Shown: positions 2,002 to 42,900 of the stretch, one piece after another | How positions within the stretch are numbered: position 1 is the first letter of the stretch | How the letters are laid out: each line of letters begins with the position of its first letter | From: Amphiscolops sp. MND2022 | Lineage: Eukaryota | DNA length: 64,000 bases | Reading direction: 5' to 3' | Assembly: GCA_964187785.1 (NCBI GenBank) | Contig: OZ076420.1 | Coordinates: 2,728,001 to 2,792,000 of the forward strand | Notes under the pieces: generated by a model | The model's input: the letters and a program-made list of their open reading frames with translations, nothing else | What the model was told of the DNA's origin: nothing | The model's database searches: none | Program-made: the position numbers and the translations under genes

Positions 2002-5000
2002 CTAACACAACAACATTCGGGGATTACCAATAAATATCCAACATTCAGAAATTTGGTTTTGTACAATCACGGAATTTTTTCTCAAAAAATCGTTTTTTTT
2101 TCATGAGAAAAATACTATTGTGATGAATCGATTCATCATTGACAAAGTTAAATGTGTCGCGTGATCCCTGATAGTATCAGGGATCACGCGACACGTTTAA
2201 CTTGGTCAATGATGAATCGATTTCATCACATCTGATGACGCTCAATTGGTCAGTCGATCAGTATTGGGTCTCATAAGATATTGAGCAGTCAAATGGGCTC
2301 TTTTCTGTCAATCCCCCACCATCTAAATTTTTCTAGGGAAACGTACAAAAAAAATTCAAACTCGCTTTATTAGAAGAGAAATTTTAAAGTTGACTTCTAT
2401 TGGAACAGTTTTTTGTTTGAACAAAACATTTTTCATTCACTTTGAATGTGATTATGTTCATATTTACTGTTTTTTGTGACTCAAAACAGGAAGCTGTTGA
2501 TTTCTTAATCAGAAATACGTGACCTCATAGGCAAAAATAAAAAAGTGTGAACAAAGTTTGTATCTCAATTGTAAACAGTCATCCTGAGAATAAATATAAA
2601 AGAAAAGGAACTTAGTTGTAAGTGTTCTTATTCTATTATTTGCACAACTTTTTTTTCAAAAAATTCAGGTGGTTCTTACAGAAAAGTTCGAAAGCTTTCC
2701 CATAAAAACGACATCTTTCACCAAATATATATAATCGGTTATTCAATTCCCAGACAATTCCGAGTCATTCTAGCTGAGTAAAAAATTACAATCGATTCTA
2801 CATTTAAATACATTGCAAAATATATTGGTCATCCCTGAAAGCGGTGAACAGTTTGAAATCTCCTCCAATGATTACTTTTTGGCACAAAAAGCGAGGCAAC
2901 AAAACGGGCGCTTTGTCGTAAGCTTCCAGAAAGGTCATGATTTGAACAACATGCGATAGCTTGTCTAGGATCTCGAAAAAGGTCACTTCGGGGGCAGTTT
3001 GAAGGTTCATAACTGCAACCGTTTCGGGGAGCAGTTGAATTTGAAGGGCGCACAGTTTGGCTTGTTTCAAACAGAATCGGGCTTCCGAGAACTTTTTGTC
3101 TTGGTTGAAGCAATTATACGCCTCAAAATAGTCTTTAGCAACATCGCCCAACATCTGAGTTGCCTCGGCGGTTCCCATGGTAACTGAGAATTTATACTTG
3201 ACGGTATTGGCCGCGCGTTCCCGAAGAACTTTGGCATACTCCTGAATGAAGTTTAGCTTTTTAAGGTAGACCTTTGATGGAGATGAGAGATGACCCTACT
3301 ACCCTTGTTTTTCGGAAATCACAAATTTTGCAAATTTGTTAAATGTTGAATATCTCTTACAAAAATCTGATAGTAAAATCTAGAATTTTGCAAAAGATGT
3401 GAATTTTTTCAACTAGGGTATAATCATTTACTGTATAATTTATTATAGCTTTTGCTATTAATTAATAAATAGTATTCTATTATAGATCCTATTTTTTGCC
3501 AATAGTATGATTATAGCTTCAATCCTTGCGCCCATCTAGGGTAGTCAGCTAGAGAAAAGTTGATTTTTTGAAAAAAAACGAAACATTAAAGACCATGAAT
3601 TAATTCTTATAACATTCAACGATGAGTCGAGTTTTCAAATTTCGAGGCAAAATTCTCATTCTTCTATTCCATCATCTCAAAAATAAATCATTATTATTGA
3701 CTTATATTTTCGTTTAAATATTTCTTTCGGTAACCCTGTAATAGGCTACAATAGAATTTCGAGCTATGGTCATCTCTGACTTTTGACTGCAAAGTTTCTT
3801 TCTGCTGTAGCAAGTGGGGCAAAATGAAGATTCGCAGCTCCAGCGCCGTTTCGGGATGGTTGTCTATGAAATCTAGCAAACATTTTCTATGTGACAAGAG
3901 TTGCACTACTTCTATACACAATACTCTATCGTGTGTCAGACATTTCAAGCAATGCACCGCTAGGTTGTAGTCGAAATGGGATCTCAAAACGGCCGTTAGG
4001 TTCGTGGAAATGGCTTCGAATTTTTTGACAGTACTCAGATGGAATGTTTTGCCCAAAAGTTCCAGAACATGGTTCATTAAACTCACAGCCGCGTAGTACT
4101 GTTGGGATTTGAGGAGGTCGAAAGACAAGCGACACATTTTCTCCATCAGCATCTGTTTGTCGGGCATGAGTTGAAGCAGGTTGTTGAACTTGGGAGTTGA
4201 TCAGGGTTGGAAAAAAGTTTTTATTGAAAAACAGAGCCGCATGTGCGGTAACATTAGAGTGCATAGGCAAGCTTACTTTGCTCAAAGCGCAACTTTGAGT
4301 TTTCAATACCTCGGATTCCACGACCATGCCTTTAACCGTGCAAACATGGCAAATTACGTCAATTACGGCACAGAATTTTGTGTGTCCCGAATTCCACGAC
4401 AAGCAGCAAAATAGCTTGCCTATGCACTGTAATGAAAGAAGTCGGAAACGGGTTAAAATATTGAAAAACAATGCTACTTTGTCATTTCGTCATTTTTGGC
4501 TATGTTTCTCAGATCCCAGAAATACGATTTTGATGCCATAACTGAAAAAAAAATCGTTCGAATCGCACGGTCAGTTTTTGAGAAAATCAAAAAAGTATAT
4601 TTTTGGACTAATTTTGGCTGTTTCTCAGATCCCAGTCATACAATTTTAATGCCAATGCGCACGCAAAGAATGACATTCAGAAAGAATGACATTCAGAAAG
4701 GACATTCTGCTGGTCCAATATTGATCATTTAGTTGAAATGTGGTACAAATGGATCAGAGGAATAATACGAGAAACAACCCCTCTTAGAACTAAACATCGA
4801 TCAAACCTTCCCCCATGGGTAACGTCTTCAACGTCGCACCTTATTAAGAAACTTAACACTGCGAAAAAACAGAATAGCAAATCAAAAATAGAAAAACTTG
4901 AAAAAGTTGTCTCACTGGCCCTGGTCAATGACCAAAAATCCTATGAAGAACATCTTTCAGATGGCAGAAATACCAACCGGTTGTTTAAGTTTTATCGCCA

Positions 5001-6921
5001 ACTGAATCGCTCCTCCTTGCCATCCTCAATGTTCCTTGCTAATGAAACACACACAACAAACCTCGGCAAAGCATCGCTATTTGCCAAGTTCTTCTCAAGT
5101 GTTTATTTCGAGTCCACGAAATTCAATCCAGACCAAGAGATTCCAGAATGTCAGTTCCCTATCATTACAAAACTTGAAGTCAACTTAGAAGAAATCTGCC
5201 AAATTTGCGATAGTTTGAACATCAGTAAAAGTAAAGGACCTGACCTCCTGCCGCCGATTGTTTTTGCAAAGTGTTCAAATTCTTTATCAAAATCTGTGTA
5301 TCAACTCATTTCAAAATCGCTACAGCTTGCCAAGTTCCCAACCTCGTGGAAGATTTCCGTTGTAAGTCCTATCCACAAAAAAGGAAACAAGTGTGATGTT
5401 ACAAATTATCGCCCAGTTTCTCTTCTGTGCATAATTTCCAAAATCATGGAAATTTTTCTCTTCATGAAGCTGTATGAACACTACCAAGATCAACTGCACA
5501 ACTCGCAATTCGGCTTTAGAAAGGGACGCTCGAGTTCCCTAAATCTGTTGGTTTATTTGGACGAAATTTATAGAGCCTTAACGGAAAAGCAACAAATTAG
5601 TGTAGTATACACAGACTTTGAAAAAGCGTTCGATCGGGTAGATCATGGCCTTCTATTGCAAAAACTGTTTCGAACAGGAATAAGAGGCAAACTTCTCAGT
5701 TTACTTGACTCGTACCTTCAAAACAGATTTCAAATGGTGAAAGTGGATGACGCTACATCACAACCATTTCCTGCAACCAGTGGAGTAGCACAAGGCGGCA
5801 TATTATCTTCACTATTTTTCAACATATTTATCAACGATCTTCCTCACATATGTCGGTTTACCTGGGCGATTCTTTATGCAGACGATGCAAAGTTCATATG
5901 TCTCAACTTAACATTATTAGAAAAACAAGAAGAATTGAACAATATTTTCATTTGGAGCGTGGATAATTTTATTAATTTTAACCTTGACAAATGTGGCCAG
6001 CTCTGCTTCACGAACGAAAACCATGATCAGTTGACTTTCGGCGGAGCGCCATTACAATCAAAGGACCAAGAAACAGACCTTGGTGTAATTATCACGAAAT
6101 CCCTGAGTTGGGTTCCACATTTCAAGTCGAGAGCCGAAAAGGCCTACAGAGTCTTTTACATGATCAAGAGAAACTCTCCCAGCCTAAGTAGCCAACACAA
6201 ACTAAATTTATACAAGAGCATGATCTTGCCAATTCTCACACACTCATCGATCATACTACCATTGAACGTGGAATGCATGAGAATCCTCGAAAGAGTTCAG
6301 AAGAAAGTCTGCAATTGGATTATTCCAGATAGTAGCTATAAGGACTGCCTTATCAAACTGAATATACTACCCGTCCCGTTTTACTTTCAACTGCTGGATC
6401 TCTTATATCTCTCGAAAATACTGACACAAAATATCAACTATGATTTTTCTGACAAATTTAACTATTACAACGAATATACTTATCACACGAGACTAGAACC
6501 CTATCGTTTCTTGCAAGAAAGCAGGCCTAAACCCGCTACTGCAGAACAAAATTTTTGGTTCCGAGCGAAACGTCTAGCCATGCAATTACCATCTCCAATT
6601 GACATTCGTGAGTATGATACTCTAAAACCGAAGCTGCTCTACTGGATGTGGCGTGAGTTTCTCGAAACCTTTGATGAACTGAACACTTGCACTTGGAGAA
6701 TGAAATGCGACTGTGTGGCAAAAAATTGCAGACTTTTGAACAACTGAAACCCTGACTCTCCTACGCAAGGTTTCTGAAACAGACTACTGCTTCTAGAACA
6801 ATGTTGGACTTTGATAATTTCTAACTGAAGTTTCAAATTTGTACACTCAATACATTATACAGTGTGCCACTTGATATATCTGGAAGGGGTTAAACCCCGT
6901 GTGGTGAAAACCACAGAATTC

Positions 6922-6952
<31 letters not shown>

Positions 6953-9900
6953 TTGTACGAAATTTTATAAAAAATAGTATGTACAGTTGTTGAGAAACTG
7001 TTTCATTGAAAGGTCGGGAGGAAAAATGGTACGATTGCATAAGTAGTCGAAATTTTTCCTCCTAAAACACGTTTTATACGTTTAAAACCAATTCAAAAGT
7101 TTTATTCGTTCAAAACACGGACAGTTTTGAAGTCTCTCGCGAGTCTGTTGCTAAGATCGGAAAGAACAAAACCCGTGGTTGAAAATACTCGCTCTAGACC
7201 CCCGCTACTGGGCGCCATGGACAGTAGATCTAGCGCGAACTCCATGAGAATTGTAGGATAGGCTCCCAAAATATTCTGGGATTTGATGAAATTGAGGATC
7301 TTTACATTGGGAGCCCTCTCAAATGATCTCTGAATATCTACTTTTGAAAAAAAAACGTTGAAAAAACGCTGGAAAAACAATTTGAAAATTACAAGTGATT
7401 AACAAGTCGGGAACGGCCCAAGTAGGCGCCCCGCTCAAGGTTCAAAATGTAAAGTTTTAAATAAACAAAAGGACATTATTGTAAATATTTTATAAAGTTT
7501 TAAGAGAAAAAATATTCATTGCAAATGCACGGAAAAGTTTCTGGCTGAAGCAGGGACTCGAACCTGCGACCGTTAGATTCCCACTAAACCGATTAACCTC
7601 TGTACCAAAAGTGGTACATACAGGGTGAGCTCTGTGGTCTGACGAACAAACAAGACGGAACGTCTAAAGTCGGCGCTATATCTAAGGCTCAAAAAGCGCA
7701 AGTCTTTTTGAAAAAAAAACTTGAAATTTTTATTTTTTTTTCTTTCAGAAAATGTCGCATAGTGCCGAAAAATGTAAAAGGGGGACCCTTTGGGCTTTAT
7801 TAACATATATTCTGTTGCAAAATATCAAAAAACTCGAAAGGGGGACTTTTTTGAGACATTAAAAAAATTTCGAAAAAAGTCGCAAAATGCCGAAAAAAAA
7901 TCGAAAGGGGGGACCCTTTAGTCTCGTCCGGTTTTGTAGGTTACGTTTAAAAAAGTAAAAAATGAAAGGGGAGCCTTTTGCACTAATTTCCGCTGACCGG
8001 ACTTGGCCTTATGGTAGTAATTTTAGTAGTTTTGATTGTAAGAAAAGTGGACCAATCAGAGTGAGATTGTAGTCTGACGAAAAAAAAACTAGCCACTGTA
8101 ACATTCGGGCTCTTTTCACTAGAAAAGCGCCGACTAAAAACTAGCCACTGTACTAGTTGGACAATTTTTGTCAAAAGCGCCGACCAAAAACAGCCTTTTT
8201 TTCAACATGTTTATTCAGCCAACCCTGATGTTGATAGTTGAGTTTCGATCGCGTTCTCTGGTTTGGTAGTAAGAGAACATAAACTGGAGGCAGCATTTCA
8301 CAACCATTTCGCCACTGACAGCGTTCGATGCCACTAGATCATGAATCAAACTGTGCTGCTCAGACTCGAGGCATTTCAGAATAGCCGAATGGATGTCGCA
8401 ACCGGCTCGTTTCAGGATCTTATTCCACTGATGGTATTCGCAATACATACGCATAAAAGGCGCGCAGTGGGGGTAGTATTGGGAACACATAGATGTTATC
8501 AAATTAGTCACCGGTTGTTGATTGTTGCTAACCAATCTGAGATCCATGAATCTTGAAAAATCAGCCAGGGTTATTTTATCCTCCAGAAGAAGCAAAGAAG
8601 CAATGACGAAACGGACAGCCGGTAAAGACTTACCGTAGTAAACACAAATTGTGATGGCCAAGTCAAAGCTCTGTCTTCTAATAAACTCGTTAACTAGGTT
8701 TGTAAATAATTGATCCGACATTCCTTTGCGAACTTGAAGATATTCCTTCAAGGGTTGCTTTTCCAATGCCGTCATGAGCGTTTTCATTTTAGCGAACAGC
8801 GAAAACTTTTTCAGCAAAAGTGAGTCATAGATTTCGATCGCTTTTTCAGAGTTAGTCGGGTCCGAGTCATTGTAGCATAACTCAACATATTTGAGCAACG
8901 AATCCACTTGAAGCTGATTCGAAACTGGTTCGGAAAGAGGAAGATTCATAGTCAGCAAAAACGTGAGTTCCGTGATCGAAAGATTCTTCTGCGTGATTAT
9001 ATGTTTGACCATGTCGTTCAAACTCATCCCGTAGGTTGCAACGTTGCTTTTCAACATCGCTTCGAAAAAGTATTCCCGCACAACGGGGGAACACGCCTGG
9101 AACAATGATGTACATTTATACATTTTTAAAATAGGCCCCTCTGGGGCTCAGTAAGTATTATTTCTGCTTTAATCTTTCATTTTCAATAATAGAATCATAT
9201 CTGGAATACCAATACACTCCTGTTTAATCACTATTTAGCGCACAATTAATCACTGTACCAGTTTATACCGCCTTGAATTCTTCTCGGACTAAAGCAAATA
9301 TAACTACTAAGCGTAAACAAAGTTTCGCATTCGCATTTGAATGCAGGCGTCGCTCTCGGCGAACGAATAATGAACACTCGTTCGCCTCATCTCAATGACG
9401 TCAGCGTACGAATGCATGATTACCACTCGCTCGTTCCATCGCACGAGAAACGAATTATTGTCTGCAGCTTGAGAAATTTGAATCTCACGCTTATACTCAC
9501 TGCCGAATAAAAAATACCTGAATTTTTCAGTAGATACAAAAATTTTAATGAAAAAAAGTGGAAATCTTGATGTTTCAATAATATTCCGTCTATCGCAGAA
9601 ATGAAATTATCACATTAGAACCGATATCATTTACACATTATGTCTTGTATCAGAAAGTATGTTTTTTAGTTCAATTTGAAACATTTCAAACTTTTGGGCC
9701 ACTTTTGTTCAAAAAACGCTTTTTACTTAAAAACAACATGCCCTAATTACTAGAAAATTCCTAGATTTGTTTCATCCATTTCGTGTGGACCTTGAAAAGG
9801 CCAAAAAATTTTTTTCAAACCATTTTCGATGTTATCAGTTGATGTCCATTTATATAATTTCAAAATTCAAATTTAAATACGAATAGTGAGTTCTTGAGAA

Positions 9901-33900: not shown

Positions 33901-36900
33901 GACCCATGCATTGCATGACGACCAAACTAATATCATCCTGTTATTGCATATTTCTCATGTTCGTACTGATTTAACGGTCCCTGGCAATACCATTAGGCGT
34001 ATTTCTCTATCATCTTTCGAGCAAAACAACCAACAAACGAAGACCGATTGCTGTTATATTTCAGATATAAAGTTACGATTTGTTTATGCAGATTCAACTT
34101 TTAACATTGAAATTTCAATTCGTTTTCCCTCCAGATGTAACTGAGAACCAAATAAGCAGACTTCAGTTACCGAGAATTAAAGGGTTCTTTATGGAGGCCA
34201 ATAGAGAGGCAGAGAAATTATAGTCAACCCTCATCATAACTGAAAACTGCCGTCATTTCAATCTCACTCGGTCATTGCATTGATAACTCTAGTCAAAGCC
34301 AGAGGGAGAGACCCCCTATGACTCAGAGCAAAAATTCAGGGAAAGAAGTGAATCAAAACAACTACTGGTGATGTTATATTATTTGATTGATTGAAGTGAA
34401 GAATAACATCCCCATCGAAGTGGAACAGAACAGCGACAACCGGACCACGGAAGCATAAGGAAGTCCCGCGGCAGGGAAAATCTCAAACGTTCTTGGACTG
34501 AAATTGGAATCACTCAACTGACACGTTCGTGGTTAGCAGAGCAGCAAGTCCAAACACCGACAGAATTGTTACTCAAAGGGTTGTTCTGAGTTTAGTCTCC
34601 GCTGTATACGATCCAAAGGGTCTCGTCGCGCCGTTTACCATCAAAGCGCGCCTGGTTTTGAATGAAATTTGCAGACTCAGTGCCGAGCAGTGGGACAATT
34701 TGTCAGACGAATATGTAACAAAGTTCTTGGAATGGAGCAAGGAGCTGAGAGTACAGTACCAAAACGTTATTTCTGTCAAACTGTTGAAACGAATCAGCTA
34801 AGCTACACTTGTTAGGTGACAGATCACAATATGCTTTCAAAGCATTCGCTTTCTTGCGAGGAAAACCAATTAGCGATCAGGGTCGTTTGACGCAGCTGAC
34901 TTTGGTCTTTGGAAAAGCTGTTCTGTTTCATCGAAGTTCAAGTGACTGCTCAGATTTTGAATTGTAGTTTAGATTTAGTTACCGAGAATTAAAGGATTCC
35001 TTAACTACTGACCCTGCATGAACTGGAAGTGTCCAATCTTCTCCCCGAAGGCAGTCCTGGTGTGAGTGTAGGGCACTGCCACGTCCAGACACGCCTGCAT
35101 GATGCCGACTGGCCCGGCTGCCAGCACCAGTCTCTCGAGGTCCAGCCCACTCATCATCACGTACACCCCCCGGCCCCGGGCACCCAGCAGGTTCTCCACA
35201 GGCACCTCGCAGTTGTCGAACACCAGTTCACACGTCGTCGATCCACGCATTCCTGCAAGTCATTAACGTCAGAAATTTCCAGGAAATCAGAGACACTGCT
35301 AATTTAATAAGTTAACGTGTACACGCAACTCCGTTTATAACGATTACGTTTATAACGACATTCCGGTTATAGCGATAGAGTTTCACGGTCCCGGCCACGA
35401 TGCTAGTATATAACGATTTTAGCTTATAACGATATTCGGATATAACGATTAACAAGCCGGGACCGGCCCAAGTCGGCGCCATATCCAAGGCTCAAAAAAA
35501 TGGACCGAGTGGCGCGCCGGGGCTCGCCAGCGCGCTAACGTCTCACAATGCCGAAAAACTGAAAGGGGGGACCCTTTGAGGTTTTTCAACATCCATTCTG
35601 TCGCAAAGCATGAAAAAATTGAAGAAATTTTTTTTTGTTTTCGGGAAAAAATTTTACAATGCCGAAAAAAACTGAAAGGAGGAACCCTTTGGGATTTTCC
35701 AACATCCATTCTGTCGCAAAACATCAAAAAAATGCAGGGGGGACCCTTTGAGGAAAAAAAATTTCGAAAAAAAAATTCCGAAAAAAATGTCTCCAGTGCC
35801 GAAAAAAATTGAAAGGGGGGACTCTTTGGTCTCTCCCGGTATGGTATTATTATTATTATTATTATTATTATGAATTCTGTGGTTTTCACCACACGGGGTT
35901 TAACCCCTTCCAGATATATCAAGTGGCACACTGTATAATGTATTGAGTGTACAAATTTGAAACTTCAGTTAGAAATTATCAAAGTCCAACATTGTTCTAG
36001 AAGCAGTGGTCTGTTTCAGAAACCTTGCGTAGGAGAGTCAGGGTTTCAGTTGTTCAAAAGTCTGCAATTTTTTGCCACACAGTCGCATTTCATTCTCCAA
36101 GTGCAAGTGTTCAGTTCATCAAAGGTTTCGAGAAACTCACGCCACATCCAGTAGAGCAGCTTCGGTTTTAGAGTATCATACTCACGAATGTCAATTGGAG
36201 ATGGTAATTGCATGGCTAGACGTTTCGCTCGGAACCAAAAATTTTGTTCTGCAGTAGCGGGTTTAGGCCTGCTTTCTTGCAAGAAACGATAGGGTTCTAG
36301 TCTCGTGTGATAAGTATATTCGTTGTAATAGTTAAATTTGTCAGAAAAATCATAGTTGATATTTTGTGTCAGTATTTTCGAGAGATATAAGAGATCCAGC
36401 AGTTGAAAGTAAAACGGGACGGGTAGTATATTCAGTTTGATAAGGCAGTCCTTATAGCTACTATCTGGAATAATCCAATTGCAGACTTTCTTCTGAACTC
36501 TTTCGAGGATTCTCATGCATTCCACGTTCAATGGTAGTATGATCGATGAGTGTGTGAGAATTGGCAAGATCATGCTCTTGTATAAATTTAGTTTGTGTTG
36601 GCTACTTAGGCTGGGAGAGTTTCTCTTGATCATGTAAAAGACTCTGTAGGCCTTTTCGGCTCTCGACTTGAAATGTGGAACCCAACTCAGGGATTTCGTG
36701 ATAATTACACCAAGGTCTGTTTCTTGGTCCTTTGATTGTAATGGCGCTCCGCCGAAAGTCAACTGATCATGGTTTTCGTTCTTGAAGCAGAGCTGGCCAC
36801 ATTTGTCAAGGTTAAAATTAATAAAATTATCCACGCTCCAAATGAAAATATTGTTCAATTCTTCTTGTTTTTCTAATAATGTTAAGTTGAGACATATGAA

Positions 36901-39900
36901 CTTTGCATCGTCTGCATAAAGAATCGCCCAGGTAAACCGACATATGTGAGGAAGATCGTTGATAAATATGTTGAAAAATAGTGAAGATAATATGCCGCCT
37001 TGTGCTACTCCACTGGTTGCAGGAAATGGTTGTGATGTAGCGTCATCCACTTTCACTATTTGAAATCTGTTTTGAAGGTACGAGTCAAGTAAACTGAGAA
37101 GTTTGCCTCTTATTCCTGTTCGAAACAGTTTTTGCAATAGAAGGCCATGATCTACCCGATCGAACGCTTTTTCAAAGTCTGTGTATACTACACTAATTTG
37201 TTGCTTTTCCGTTAAGGCTCTATAAATTTCGTCCAAATAAACCAACAGATTTAGGGAACTCGAGCGTCCCTTTCTAAAGCCGAATTGCGAGTTGTGCAGT
37301 TGATCTTGGTAGTGTTCATACAGCTTCATGAAGAGAAAAATTTCCATGATTTTGGAAATTATGCACAGAAGAGAAACTGGGCGATAATTTGTAACATCAC
37401 ACTTGTTTCCTTTTTTGTGGATAGGACTTACAACGGAAATCTTCCACGAGGTTGGGAACTTGGCAAGCTGTAGCGATTTTGAAATGAGTTGATACACAGA
37501 TTTTGATAAAGAATTTGAACACTTTGCAAAAACAATCGGCGGCAGGAGGTCAGGTCCTTTACTTTTACTGATGTTCAAACTATCGCAAATTTGGCAGATT
37601 TCTTCTAAGTTGACTTCAAGTTTTGTAATGATAGGGAACTGACATTCTGGAATCTCTTGGTCTGGATTGAATTTCGTGGACTCGAAATAAACACTTGAGA
37701 AGAACTTGGCAAATAGCGATGCTTTGCCGAGGTTTGTTGTGTGTGTTTCATTAGCAAGGAACATTGAGGATGGTAAGGAGGAGCGATTCAGTTGGCGATA
37801 AAACTTAAACAACCGGTTGGTATTTCTGCCATCTGAAAGATGTTCTTCATAGGATTTTTGGTCATTGACCAGGGCCAGTGAGACAACTTTATCAAGTTTT
37901 TCTATTTTTGATTTGCTATTCTGTTTTTTCGCAGTGTTAAGTTTCTTAATAAGGTGCGACGTTGAAGACGTTACCCATGGGGGAAGGTTTGATCGATGTT
38001 TAGTTCTAAGAGGGGTTGTTTCTCGTATTATTCCTCTGATCCATTTGTACCACATTTCAACTAAATGATCAATATTGGACCAGCAGAATGTTTCAAACGG
38101 GTTTTGAATGATAAGTTCTTCCATCCGAAGGTAATCTGCTTTGCAGTAGCTCAAAAATTCTGATGAATTTTCAGGTTTGAACTTATTTCCATGGCCACGT
38201 ACAGTAAAGACAGACCATAAAGGTTCATGATTGGACTTTACCCCGACGATTTCTTCAGCTATGCGTATATCCTGCACTTCAATTTTTCTAGAAATGAAAA
38301 ATAGATCGTATATACCAGAGACAGTTGTGTTAAAGGTTACTTTCTGATCGAGATTCATTTTTTCAGCGAAGTTCAGAAGAAGTTTCTGTGACTCATTTTG
38401 GTATGAAAGATCTCTCCAGTCGATATCACTGTAGTTAAAATCACCAGTCATGATTAAAGCATCATGTTTGGTAGTGGCGAAAATATTGAAAAGTTCTGTA
38501 ATAACTGACGGACTAAGTATATATTCGCTCTCAGAAGGAGGGAAGTAACAGTTTATGAGTAAAATAGTTGATGAATCAAACGTAAATGTGCATGCTGTAC
38601 AGGCGCCCAGATACTTTGTTGGTAGAGTAATTTTTCTGCCAGTATAGCGCTTCTTAAGTGCAATTAGTACTCCGCCATGTAATGAATTTCCATCTTTGTT
38701 GGGAAGTCTTTCAGATCTAAATAGATCATATTGTGGAAGGTAAAGTTCTTCGTCGTTGAAGAATTTGGTTAGCCATGTTTCACATATCATTATTATGTCG
38801 GGGTCTTTCATGCAAGCGTAATTGGATAGAGAGATTCGTTTTTCTTTATTAATTATACTTCTAGCGTTATATTGCAATACAGAAAATAACTGGTCAGAAA
38901 GTCCTAGTCAATTCAGATCAACTCTGCGGTCATTCAAGAATAGTTCAAAACTCCGAATCCGCAGCGTTGAAGGCTGGTTTCCCTCGTTTATCAGTTCTCT
39001 TCTCTTTTTAAGTAATTTGTTCTCTAGTTCTTGTTCTGTTTTGCTGAGTGATTTGCTGATGAACACTTTATATTTATCTTGTATTCCATCGCCTTCGTAG
39101 AACCTTAATTTGTTGGCTCTTGCAAGGATTTTGTTCACAACCAGCTCGGTTTTAAACTTGACCAAGAGTGTTCGTGGACGTGTAGTATTCGGTTGATATT
39201 TGCCCAGCCGATGGAACGATTTAATGCAATCGTCTTCGCACTCGAGGTATTTTACAATGCTAGCAATGCTCTTTTCTTCGTAGTCAATTTGTTCACTCCG
39301 ATTTGGTTTGGAGTGGGAGGATTTGAATTCAGGAATTCCCGAAACTCTTAATTCGATGGACCTTTCATTGATGTTTACCTCGTTGTGAGTTACTTCATTG
39401 TTTGTAACTTTTGTGGGTACTGGCTGTTTCAGTTGTTGAACTTCTTCTACTACTTTGGCAAGGGACTGCGTTATTTCACTGTATGTTGCTTTTGAGGGTG
39501 GTGGTTGTTCCTTCAGCTGCTGGACTTCTTCTACGACCTTTGCGAGAGACTGTTTCATCTCTCCAATCTCGGTTTTGATTGTTCCGTTGTCACGATATCT
39601 GTTGATGAGCTCTTTGAAAAGGCTCACTACATTGCCTTTCACCGTTTTATTCAGATACTTGTTAAGATCATCGTCTGTCGAAGAGAGTACTTCGTCCAGT
39701 GTTGGGTAATACGACGAATCAGCAGAAGCTAACCTGCCGCGTTCTCCCATTTTACTTCAATTGCCAACGATTTTCTGCAAAAGAACCTTTGCACAGCCCG
39801 ACACGGGTCTGCGCAGAAGTTGAAATACAGAAATTTTGAAAATTCTTCAATTTAGAGGATTTTTTTTTGTTCGTATAGACAGCTGGCTGCAGCACTTTGA

Positions 39901-42900
39901 ACCAGGTAAGAGAGTATAGGTTGTGGACCACTTGGGGAAAGATGTTGAAGGCTCGGGCCGGTTTCTAAAAACCCTTTTTCAAGGGACACCCATTAGACCG
40001 GAACTCAAACACCATATCATTCTATTTAATAAGTTTAAGTATGTTACGCGGAAAAACAGGTAAAACCTTTTTGGTTCAGTTCGCTAGACCAAATAGTGCA
40101 ATTTGACACCATAATATTTTGTAGAACTTTTAAGAACTATTTTGGTCAGTTCGTGTGGATTGAAAAAAAAAAAGTCACTATAATAGTCGCGTTTCACTTC
40201 ATGAAGCGCCGACTAAAAAACGCCGGTCCCCGGGAAATCGTTATAAGCGGAGTTGAGTGTAATACGATGATGTCGTCAAAGTTACCCCGAATTACACACT
40301 TTGATTATATTACACTGTGTAGACCAATCAATTAGTGTATTCTGGTCAAAATGTGTACCAGATTAAAGTGGAATTTCAATTAAATTCCGTATAGATGAGC
40401 GAGGTGGAAATTGGTCAAAGCGCGTAATTGAGTATTGTGTAAAGGAGTCAAACCACGAAATTTAATCACTTAAGGAAACGATTATTCAAATAGTGAAATG
40501 AGTATTGAAACGTAGAGTCTTTAAAATAATAACGCGTTGTTATTGGCTATTCATCGAGCTAGCGAGATCTTGCTAGTTCGATTCGGCTCATGCATCGTAA
40601 TTATTTTTCCCAAAATGATCAAGAAAGAAAGTTTTCAGAACATTTTGCTCACGAATATCAGGGTGGCCAGTTTTTTTCAACAAAAAAGCGACCCAATCAA
40701 AATCATAGAAATTTACGTTTTTTACTTAAAAAGTTACCAAACGTTTCTTCAAAAAAGATGTTTTAGTAACCATAAATTATAATAGGAATAAAATATTGAA
40801 CAGAATATCTGATATAGGTATACAGATAAGCATTCAAAAATTATTGCGTAACAAAGAGTCAATGATATTTCCAGATATAACATTGCTGTGTCCATTTTGG
40901 GCACTTAATCTCTTATAGCGTAAAAACAGGCGACTTTGGGGGAAAAGCTTCCAGGTCGCTTTAAAGCGACCCAACTGTCCACCCTGTTTTGGTATCCAAA
41001 AAATTATCGGAAAAGTCTATTTTTCAGTCGATCCCCGCATTTAAATAACAAGATTTAAGTGAACAAGTCGTAAACAGCATAGGTCGGCGCCATATCTAAG
41101 GCTCAAAAATAGCAAAAGGACTTCAAAGTGTCAAAGTATTCTCTTCTACAGTGCCCGAAAATTCCATAAGTTGGACCAAATTGGCGCGCCGGGGGACCCT
41201 TGAGATTTTTTATCCATTTTGCCGCAAATCATCAAAAAATCGAAGGGGGACCCTTTGAAGTCATATAAAGTTTTCGAGAAAAATTCTCACAATTTTCCAT
41301 GACGACGACACTTTCCATGAAGCAATCAAAAATTCTTCCGAATGAAACAGAAATCGGAATAAAATAAACACGATGCTGAACATCGAAATTGATCCACCAA
41401 ATAGAAGATTACTCATTTCACTTAATGTTTCCAGTTGTCTTCTATCTTTTCAAAAACATTTCTAGTAACTTCGCGTATACCATTGATTGATCATATATTA
41501 TTATTATAGTACCTTCAAAATGAGCAAACATCGTGGATTCATCTGAAGCTTCTTTTCAAAAATTAGTAATTGAGTATGACATTGCATTCGAGCTCCATTT
41601 CCATTTCAGCTCAACGCATTAGATCGATACACAGTAATCGGGACAGTGCAGAAGACGAAAAATAATTTGCACAATTCCGCGGGCTTCAGTATTCAGATGT
41701 TTTGCAACGATGGATGTTAAAAATCCGAAAGGATTTCCCTTTTAGCGGGCCGGGGGATTCACAAAACGACATTTAAATTTCATTTCCAAAACCAGCGTGA
41801 GTAGTAAGGGAAGGGGGGTTTACTGCAATTTTTCGATCCCAAACCATCATCTGCAATTTTTCGATCCCAAACCACCGAGTGTAAAATTTCGATCCCAAAC
41901 CAAAATTCTGCTAAGTCATAAAGGTCAAAGTTTGAATTCACTCCAACTGTCATTTTTATTTGCTAATTACACCAACTATCATTTCTAGAGAGACAATTAC
42001 TTATCAAAACGAAGAAACTGAGGGAATCTGAAAAGTCAACGGAAACTGACGTTTTACTAACACCACCTTAGATTTGCAGAAACTGCAAATTCTTTTTCAA
42101 AATTGAATCAATAACCTGTATATCGCCACAAAACAATTCCAGTTGAATAAAATAAATCTCGAGCTTTTGATAATAGAGGATGTGAAAGGACGTACTCCGG
42201 TAAATGGAAAACCTGCAAAAACTGAACCAGCAGTATCTTGTTCCTATATCAAAGCTGGAATCATGATTGAAAATTCCGTGACTAGAGGAAAATTCCGTAT
42301 CGAGGAGTTAACTAAAAATAAATCAAAACCGACCATTTCTTTGCTGATTAGTCTCAAATTCAGTTGGTTTTGACACTATTCAAGTTATTCTGATGGCGAC
42401 TGTGTTCAGGGAAATTCCATCGAAATACTGGTTGATTTTATTCCACTCTGAAAATAACATCTCAAACACTTCTCAGGAAACAGAAACAGAGGCTTCAGGA
42501 GCAGCTTGTATGCCAACTAGTTTGTGTAATTTGTTGGAGATCCTCGTTTGCTCGCACGATGCGCAATATATCGGACGGCAACACAAGGAAAACGAATGCA
42601 ACCATGGAGAATTGAGAAGCTTCTGTGAAAATTTCCCTCTTGATAATCATCATGTATTGCTCTACATTCCCAGCTCCACAAATATTCAGGATGTGTTGAA
42701 ACAGGCTGTGACACAAGTTCTATCAACAGCACAGAACGCGTAAGCGAAGATTTTCACTGTTTCTTACCCCGAGAATTTTATAAAGTCAGAGGCAGCTGTT
42801 TCCTTCTGCATGAGAGGGGAAAAATTAAATATCTTATGAATCAGAAGACAACTGAAGATTTGGGATGCACATTCAATTGCGTTTGGGAGTATCAAAAGCA

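Follow-up and report, generated by a model that had tools for sequence, protein, structure and literature searches.

How a long interspersed nuclear element (LINE) translates the second of its open reading frames (ORF2) from a bicistronic RNA has long been an open question, and a locus in the genome of Amphiscolops sp. MND2022 raises it in a particular form. The window, by which we mean the whole stretch of 64,000 nucleotides that was analysed (assembly GCA_964187785.1, contig OZ076420.1, positions 2,728,001 to 2,792,000), carries on its minus strand a full-length LINE whose ORF1 and ORF2 lie in one frame and are separated by a single TGA; how is the second of them made? Comparison of this junction with its relatives leads us to think it likely that programmed readthrough of the UGA yields a Gag-Pol-like ORF1-ORF2 fusion. 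The pattern that programmed readthrough predicts is the one that we find: a single UGA, C or CUA directly after it, a strictly kept frame, coding sequence from the first codon onward and no start codon. An earlier reading of the window's letters, here called the original prediction, had proposed that this LINE uses such a gag-pol-like strategy, and the conservation of the TGA, of the frame and of the context supports that proposal on comparative grounds.

The argument needs the following features, given in window coordinates.

35845..40040, minus strand: full-length LINE copy of ~4.2 kb (5′ untranslated region (UTR), ORF1, TGA, ORF2, 3′ UTR and (AAT)n tail), its ends being where copies of the same family cease to match
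39751..40040, minus strand: 5′ UTR of ~290 nt; family copies align from query ~510-519 of 901 (~40040) down to the ATG of ORF1
38911..39750, minus strand: ORF1, 280 amino acids (aa), with its ATG at 39750, from the ORF list and translation
38908..38910, minus strand: the sole in-frame TGA separating ORF1 and ORF2 and the proposed readthrough site, from the sequence and the family comparison
38902..38907, minus strand: 3′ context CTAGGA, in which the C at +4 and the CTA are conserved and the G at +7 is not
38866..38907, minus strand: the first 14 post-stop codons, forming the first APE strand up to the conserved Asn (YN-A-RS), with no ATG
36049..38907, minus strand: ORF2 frame, 953 codons, from the open reading frame and Pfam
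~38221-38907, minus strand: APE endonuclease (Pfam Exo_endo_phos/Exo_endo_phos_2, E 4e-10 for Exo_endo_phos_2)
~36772-37422, minus strand: reverse transcriptase (RT), RVT_1 (Pfam, E 4e-26)
36046..36048, minus strand: TGA terminator of ORF2, with a purine (A) at +4 in contrast to the stop of ORF1
35845..36045, minus strand: 3′ UTR of ~200 nt with an (AAT)n microsatellite tail at its end
4702..6948, plus strand: 5′-truncated daughter copy of 2247 bp, matching the 3′ part of the full-length element at 99.78% identity and with the same (AAT)n end

Alignment of the family copies places the 5′ end of the LINE at ~40036-40041 and its 3′ end at 35845. At the junction, ORF1 ends in ...VDLN-TGA and the sequence runs on, its frame unchanged, as CTA GGA CTT TCT GAC CAG TTA TTT TCT GTA TTG CAA TAT AAC GCT. 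The original prediction had this right, both in stating that the frame stays open into the APE domain (it does so for 953 codons) and in giving the predicted fusion a length of 1234 aa (280+1+953). Its account of the missing start codon is equally accurate: no ATG precedes the conserved Asn, the 'M' with which the ORF list opens ORF2 is a TTG (38877-38875, post-stop codon 11), and the earliest post-stop ATG is codon 33 (38811-38809), which is codon 23 counted from the TTG. That ATG lies downstream of the conserved Asn (post-stop codon 14, 38868-38866) and just upstream of the Glu (codon 43). Catalytic Asn and Glu at post-stop residues 14 and 43 correspond to N14 and E43 of the human L1 endonuclease, and by this correspondence the TGA sits exactly at the start of the endonuclease domain. 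Further into ORF2, the RT matches human L1 ORF2p structures (E 7e-17) as well as R2 structures.

The TGA is not an assembly slip, since an independent public run made from the same sample has a 151-base contig that spans 38812-38962 with zero differences. Logan contigs (of unknown kind) of four runs, all from one sample, show no variant at 38908-38910. A loose contig end at 38091 coincides with the truncation point of the 4702-6948 daughter copy.

Within the 1.07-Gb genome, seven junctions belong to the family of the window element, family A, at 88-96% identity. The stop codon position reads TGA in six of these and TGG in one; CTA follows it directly in all seven, and the next base is G in two and A in five. 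An eighth copy has a deletion that spans the junction site. The single TGG copy (C6), together with the true single-ORF relatives found in metagenomes and described below, could be taken to mean that the TGA is a private or recurrent nonsense mutation, so that master elements carry a sense codon and TGA copies are dead. We consider this scarcely credible. The TGA is found in every diverged family and in the window copy, which has both of its ORFs intact and a 99.78% identical daughter 32 kb away; the TGG copy is itself frameshifted further into ORF2; and independent stops at the same codon in 12 families are not believable. The near identity of the daughter further indicates that the TGA-bearing lineage moved recently. 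The 4702-6948 copy points to retrotransposition or local duplication in the very recent past; target-site duplications were not obvious for either LINE copy in the window. As a separate observation, a tandem array of 15-bp period runs on from the 3′ end of the C6 copy (C6:1654711-1654947) and matches the element's last 27 bases, the tail repeat having been expanded.

The same layout recurs far outside family A. A six-frame search of the genome with ORF1 returned at least 138 scored matches among 1369 candidates, at 25-48% identity, and the junctions inspected at ~30 loci define family A and six further families, B-G. In all seven, ORF1 is followed by a single TGA and then by an ORF2 that keeps the frame; the distance from the stop to the conserved Asn is 12-14 codons, and the linker peptides are unrelated from family to family. 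Two more families in this genome, J and K, have a TGA in frame with ORF1 matches. They were spotted among the listed matches of a pattern census (TGA, 36 nt, (Y/F)NIRS codons), which gave 149 matches against 92 in a reversed control, is too noisy for statistics and served only this end. Three others, H, I and M, come from the ENA assembly ERZ25878734 and share the in-frame ORF1-TGA-ORF2 arrangement (the ORF1 of I has a PHD finger, and M is decayed); nothing in this genome matches their DNA at the nucleotide level, so that another species is their probable source. The total is thus at least nine families in this genome (A-G, J and K) and three in ERZ25878734, making 12, of which at least 11 are sisters of A; the spacing of 12-14 codons from stop to Asn holds for all of them. 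The recurrence of one layout across so many diverged families puts the arrangement far beyond chance.

Taking the majority base of each family, the +4 position is C in 11 of the 12. Directly after the stop, six families (A, B, C, H, I and J) have CTA and three (D, G and K) have CAG or CAA; E has CTC (with CCC and ATC variants), F has CTT and M has GGA. No ATG between the stop and the Asn is conserved across families, and neither is any near-cognate start codon. Where a Met is present (in part of B, in C and in F), it stands four residues before the Asn at a hydrophobic position that is I, V or L in other families. Both the linker and the tail of ORF1 vary in length between families, which implies that insertions and deletions occurred there and that each of them preserved the frame.

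Two candidates dropped out of this comparison. A second apparent sense variant, protein P0006, shows a 'W' at the stop; its contig (L074:4078-4082) has TGA, and the residue is a gene-caller artefact. A distant ORF1 homologue ending in TAG lies on a short, internally deleted contig (L068, GCA_022075345.1) and is uninformative. The caller behind P0006 evidently read TGA as sense, and any 'fusion' protein from that collection should be compared with its DNA. Two features of the ERZ25878734 families are recorded here in their own right. The ORF2 of family I ends in TGA CGC TGA (L067:8149-8160), a UGA-C of the leaky type that is backed up two codons on by another in-frame TGA and resembles a fail-safe double stop. 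In family M (L075:1629-7446), head-to-tail units of ~1.87 kb carry an ORF1 fragment at 1629 and 3501, with a further match at 7246-7497.

Relatives beyond these families are built differently. The nearest of them by ORF2, at 25-28% identity, are four metagenome contigs (L069, L070, L072 and L073) in which ORF1 ends in TAA and ORF2, lying in another frame, begins with an ATG that precedes the Asn by 8-13 codons; the two ORFs overlap by 11 or 20 nt in two of them and lie 13 or 116 nt apart in the other two. This is the usual LINE layout. ORF1 and ORF2 share one frame in 12 of 12 families against none of the four outside relatives. Other metagenome relatives, P0018 and P0031, are true single ORFs in which a PHD-bearing N-terminal region is joined to APE-RT, and they indicate that joining an ORF1-type protein covalently to ORF2 can work in this part of the tree.

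To understand whether stop, frame and context have simply been inherited, their constancy must be set against the divergence of the families. The intact ORF2s, four in number, fall into a single clade (SH-aLRT 100), with identities of 37-46% and 1.1-1.6 substitutions per site between them, and where identical residues have four-fold degenerate codons the families agree in the third base in only 23-32% of cases, which is full saturation. The stop is nevertheless TGA in all 12 families, with TAA or TAG in none. A stop held only by plain termination constraint would drift among TGA, TAA and TAG, and its invariance at saturation therefore points to selection. The context shows the same bias: a C at +4, compared with 19% C at first codon positions, has P about 1.5e-5 (nine families, A-I), and CTA has P about 1e-7 against its 1.5% share of codons and P about 8e-4 against its 14% share of Leu codons (CTA in five of the nine families A-I, the sixth, J, having come later), all of these tests treating kindred families as independent and thereby somewhat overstating the significance. 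In the 13 post-stop codons of the nine families there are no stops in 117 codons of frame 0, compared with 9 and 11 in the other two frames. These comparisons indicate that the TGA and its context are under selection and are not merely a shared history. The original prediction had allowed that a sense codon in other copies, a frame that varied, or a start at the TTG or a downstream ATG would speak for another explanation; what the copies and families show is TGA in nearly all of family A and in every diverged family, a frame kept throughout, and neither start conserved across families.

The strict identity of the codon also has another conceivable cause. UGA is the selenocysteine codon, and this animal might insert selenocysteine here or read the codon with a dedicated suppressor tRNA of its own. 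However, TGA occurs at none of 4754 sense codons in intact ORFs and it ends ORF2 of the same element, from which we conclude that it is a genuine stop in this organism. An Rfam scan of 35500-40300, with E up to 1, gave no match in or around the element and no selenocysteine insertion sequence (SECIS), and the 3′ UTRs of the families are unrelated. We therefore give decoding by selenocysteine or a suppressor only the slightest chance.

A more serious contender is termination at the UGA followed by an immediate non-AUG restart, as in L1, which would produce a separate ORF2p and no fusion. Such reinitiation would account for the missing ATG, and with the stop lying exactly at the start of the APE domain it would give a complete ORF2p. 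It also has relatives among known elements, as human L1 ORF2 translation is AUG-independent (PMC5972666) and SART1 couples stop and start (PMC3894237). What it leaves unexplained is the frame shared by every family and by none of the outside relatives, the restriction of the stop to TGA at saturation, and the C or CTA after it. Moreover, the post-stop sequence has no conserved near-cognate start, a SART1-type structure downstream was not found, and an AUG at the stop of the UAAUG type is lacking, with none within 32 codons in family A and none conserved across families. On this balance we judge AUG-less reinitiation unlikely, and we continue to favour readthrough.

The stop could also be removed from the RNA, either by A-to-I editing of UGA to UGG or by splicing of a small intron, leaving one continuous ORF. 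The sole sense variant among the genomic copies is indeed TGG, as editing might lead one to expect; it is, however, a single transition in a decayed copy with a frameshifted ORF2. A G stands 5′ of the adenosine that would be edited, around which there is no stable duplex, and no in-frame GT..AG pair brackets the stop across families whose linkers are unrelated. Removal of the stop at the RNA level thus seems very improbable to us, and programmed readthrough remains the reading that we develop below.

Published readthrough contexts fit the junctions well. Type II readthrough is characterized by the hexamers UGACUA and UGACGG, of which the former has strong basal activity and only a conditional need of structure downstream; in human genes UGACUAG is read through at a rate of at least about 1.3%; and UGACAG, UGACUC and UGACUU are among the known readthrough contexts (PMC13517186). 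The CAG, CAA, CTC and CTT contexts seen in our families count among those published (PMC13517186). The original prediction had named UGA-CUAG as the signal. Of this, the TGA and the following C, often as CTA, are conserved, but the fourth base is not, and the putative signal that is conserved is UGA-C(UA), not specifically UGA-CUAG.

Several points weigh against readthrough, in addition to the assumed independence behind the P values given above. The G of 'CUAG' is found in only two of the seven family A copies and is variable in the other families. A stimulatory stem in the ~150 nt downstream, which the original prediction had suggested looking for, did not emerge: the 151 nt after the stop contain no stimulatory structure, their minimum free energy of -14.1 kcal/mol being less stable than the shuffle mean of -18.1 kcal/mol (z = +1.3). 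One subfamily of E has an A at +4, and the decayed family M has a G there; families J, K and M rest on short matches or decayed copies. Human L1 ORF2 starts without an AUG by a mechanism that is still unresolved, and a missing ATG alone is consequently not decisive (PMC5972666). Finally, the fusion protein and the passage of ribosomes over the stop are deduced from comparison.

If these junctions are read through, we would expect most ribosomes to stop at the UGA and release ORF1p, while a few per cent would read UGA-C(UA) by means of a near-cognate tRNA and go on in frame, giving the 1234-aa ORF1-EN-RT fusion, in which EN is the endonuclease, much as Gag-Pol arises in retroviruses and nsP1234 in alphaviruses. 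Near-cognate insertion at UGA places Trp, Arg or Cys. The low rate of readthrough would set a high ratio of ORF1p to ORF2p, and the coiled coil that the two products share could pull the fusion into ORF1p trimers on its own RNA. We infer the occurrence of readthrough, its rate, the inserted amino acid and the assembly of the fusion from sequence. Extending this to the whole group, we lean towards the view that a CR1-like LINE clade of this worm lineage has swapped bicistronic ORF2 initiation for UGA readthrough, so that every ORF2p would be covalently joined to an ORF1p able to form trimers with free ORF1p on the element's RNA; this would be the first such LINE lineage.

The proposed arrangement resembles several known systems without coinciding with any of them. 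Like the gag-UAG-pol of Moloney murine leukaemia virus (MoMLV) (PMC13517186) and the gag-UGA-pol of Candida Tca2 (PMC3956500), it places a nucleic-acid-binding protein and a polymerase in one frame on either side of one stop, and as with Gag-stop-Pol a small readthrough fraction would set the stoichiometry and the fusion would co-assemble via its upstream protein. In contrast to Gag-stop-Pol, this is an element without long terminal repeats (non-LTR) that uses target-primed reverse transcription, with no protease to release Pol and no pseudoknot; in contrast to MoMLV in particular, the stop is UGA-C(UA) and not UAG-G plus structure. The hexamer UGA CUA and its variants CUC, CUU and CAG are shared with alphavirus nsP3-UGA-C(UA)-nsP4 and with PSIV (PMC13517186), although in those RNA viruses readthrough has been measured, whereas here conservation makes it likely and no extended stem-loop is predicted. 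The exact UGA CUAG of the mammalian OPRL1, AQP4 and MAPK10 class is present in the window copy and one sister copy; unlike in that class, the G at +7 is unconserved and the predicted product gains an entire second polyprotein where that class gains a short C-terminal extension. Finally, the element has the same domains as L1, SART1, the LINEs with overlapping ORFs and the 2A-bearing LINEs (L1Tc and those of sea urchins), and the same need for little ORF2p from a bicistronic RNA. It differs from all of them in having no conserved ATG, overlap, spacer or NPGP, its ORFs being in frame across one UGA. The NPGP of the 2A motif, D(V/I)ExNPGP, occurs nowhere in the ORF1-ORF2 translation.

A review of protein biogenesis in non-LTR elements gives stop-start coupling, reinitiation, internal ribosome entry sites and 2A as strategies and leaves readthrough unmentioned (PMC3894237), and reviews of recoding and reinitiation, including PMC5972666, are likewise without readthrough for non-LTR elements. 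Our search of the literature on in-frame stops or readthrough in LINEs found no precedent. Zorro3 of Candida, which we considered as one, does not qualify, as its ORF2 depends on the first ATG and its ORFs are separated by several stops. In some plant L1-type LINEs (Arabidopsis ATLN/Ta11), in-frame stops between ORF1 and ORF2 have been noted. If our reading is true, it would add a fourth strategy for ORF2, convergent with those of retroviruses and alphaviruses, and it predicts an ORF1-ORF2 fusion that would provide a physical basis for cis-preference, for the stoichiometry of the ribonucleoprotein and for the ORF1p:ORF2p ratio. The families would also represent a dozen natural UGA contexts (CUA, CAG, CAA, CUC and CUU, and exceptionally AUC and GGA) that have been selected in an animal phylum to which little study has been given. 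For annotation there is a warning, as an in-frame TGA between ORF1 and ORF2 would here be part of the design and no mark of a dead copy.

The protein upstream of the stop has the organization expected of a Gag-like partner. An AlphaFold model built on 13 homologues gives ORF1 N-terminal helices (a coiled coil), an RRM-like domain and a small C-terminal domain or sheet, with a pLDDT (the model's per-residue confidence) of 83-91 over residues ~130-280. The top PDB matches of this model are to the human LINE-1 ORF1p trimer (E 2e-5), and by its predicted fold ORF1 resembles L1 ORF1p; no Pfam family matches it. A PHD finger is additionally present in the ORF1 of sister families. Within the helical region of the window copy (39480-39620, minus strand, residues ~45-95), a 14-aa motif is present twice, ~30 residues apart.

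The element shows hallmarks of the LINE type: APE followed by RT in ORF2, a Gag-like ORF1, 5′-truncated copies and a 3′ tail of simple repeats, not poly-A. In an RT tree whose references are uncurated, the element falls together with a C. briggsae RT and a 'jockey-like' (CR1-type) protein from a bird, and an outgroup that bears RNase H stands apart. From its domains, its tail and the truncation of its copies the element appears to be an intact, recently active CR1-like LINE of the Jockey superfamily, a class name that rests on those uncurated relatives.

Other repeats adjoin the LINE on both sides. Directly beyond its 3′ tail, window positions 35491-35847 hold a repeat of ~357 bp with more than 30 copies in the genome at 95-96% identity, each of them followed ~90 bp further on by a 40-bp perfect match. 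It looks like a young family resembling short interspersed nuclear elements or miniature inverted-repeat transposable elements, and its adjacency to the LINE tail may be chance. Just upstream of the 5′ end of the LINE lie two interspersed repeats (40257-40550 and 40039-40263), one with at least 30 copies at 85-91% identity and the other with two copies at 94-95%.

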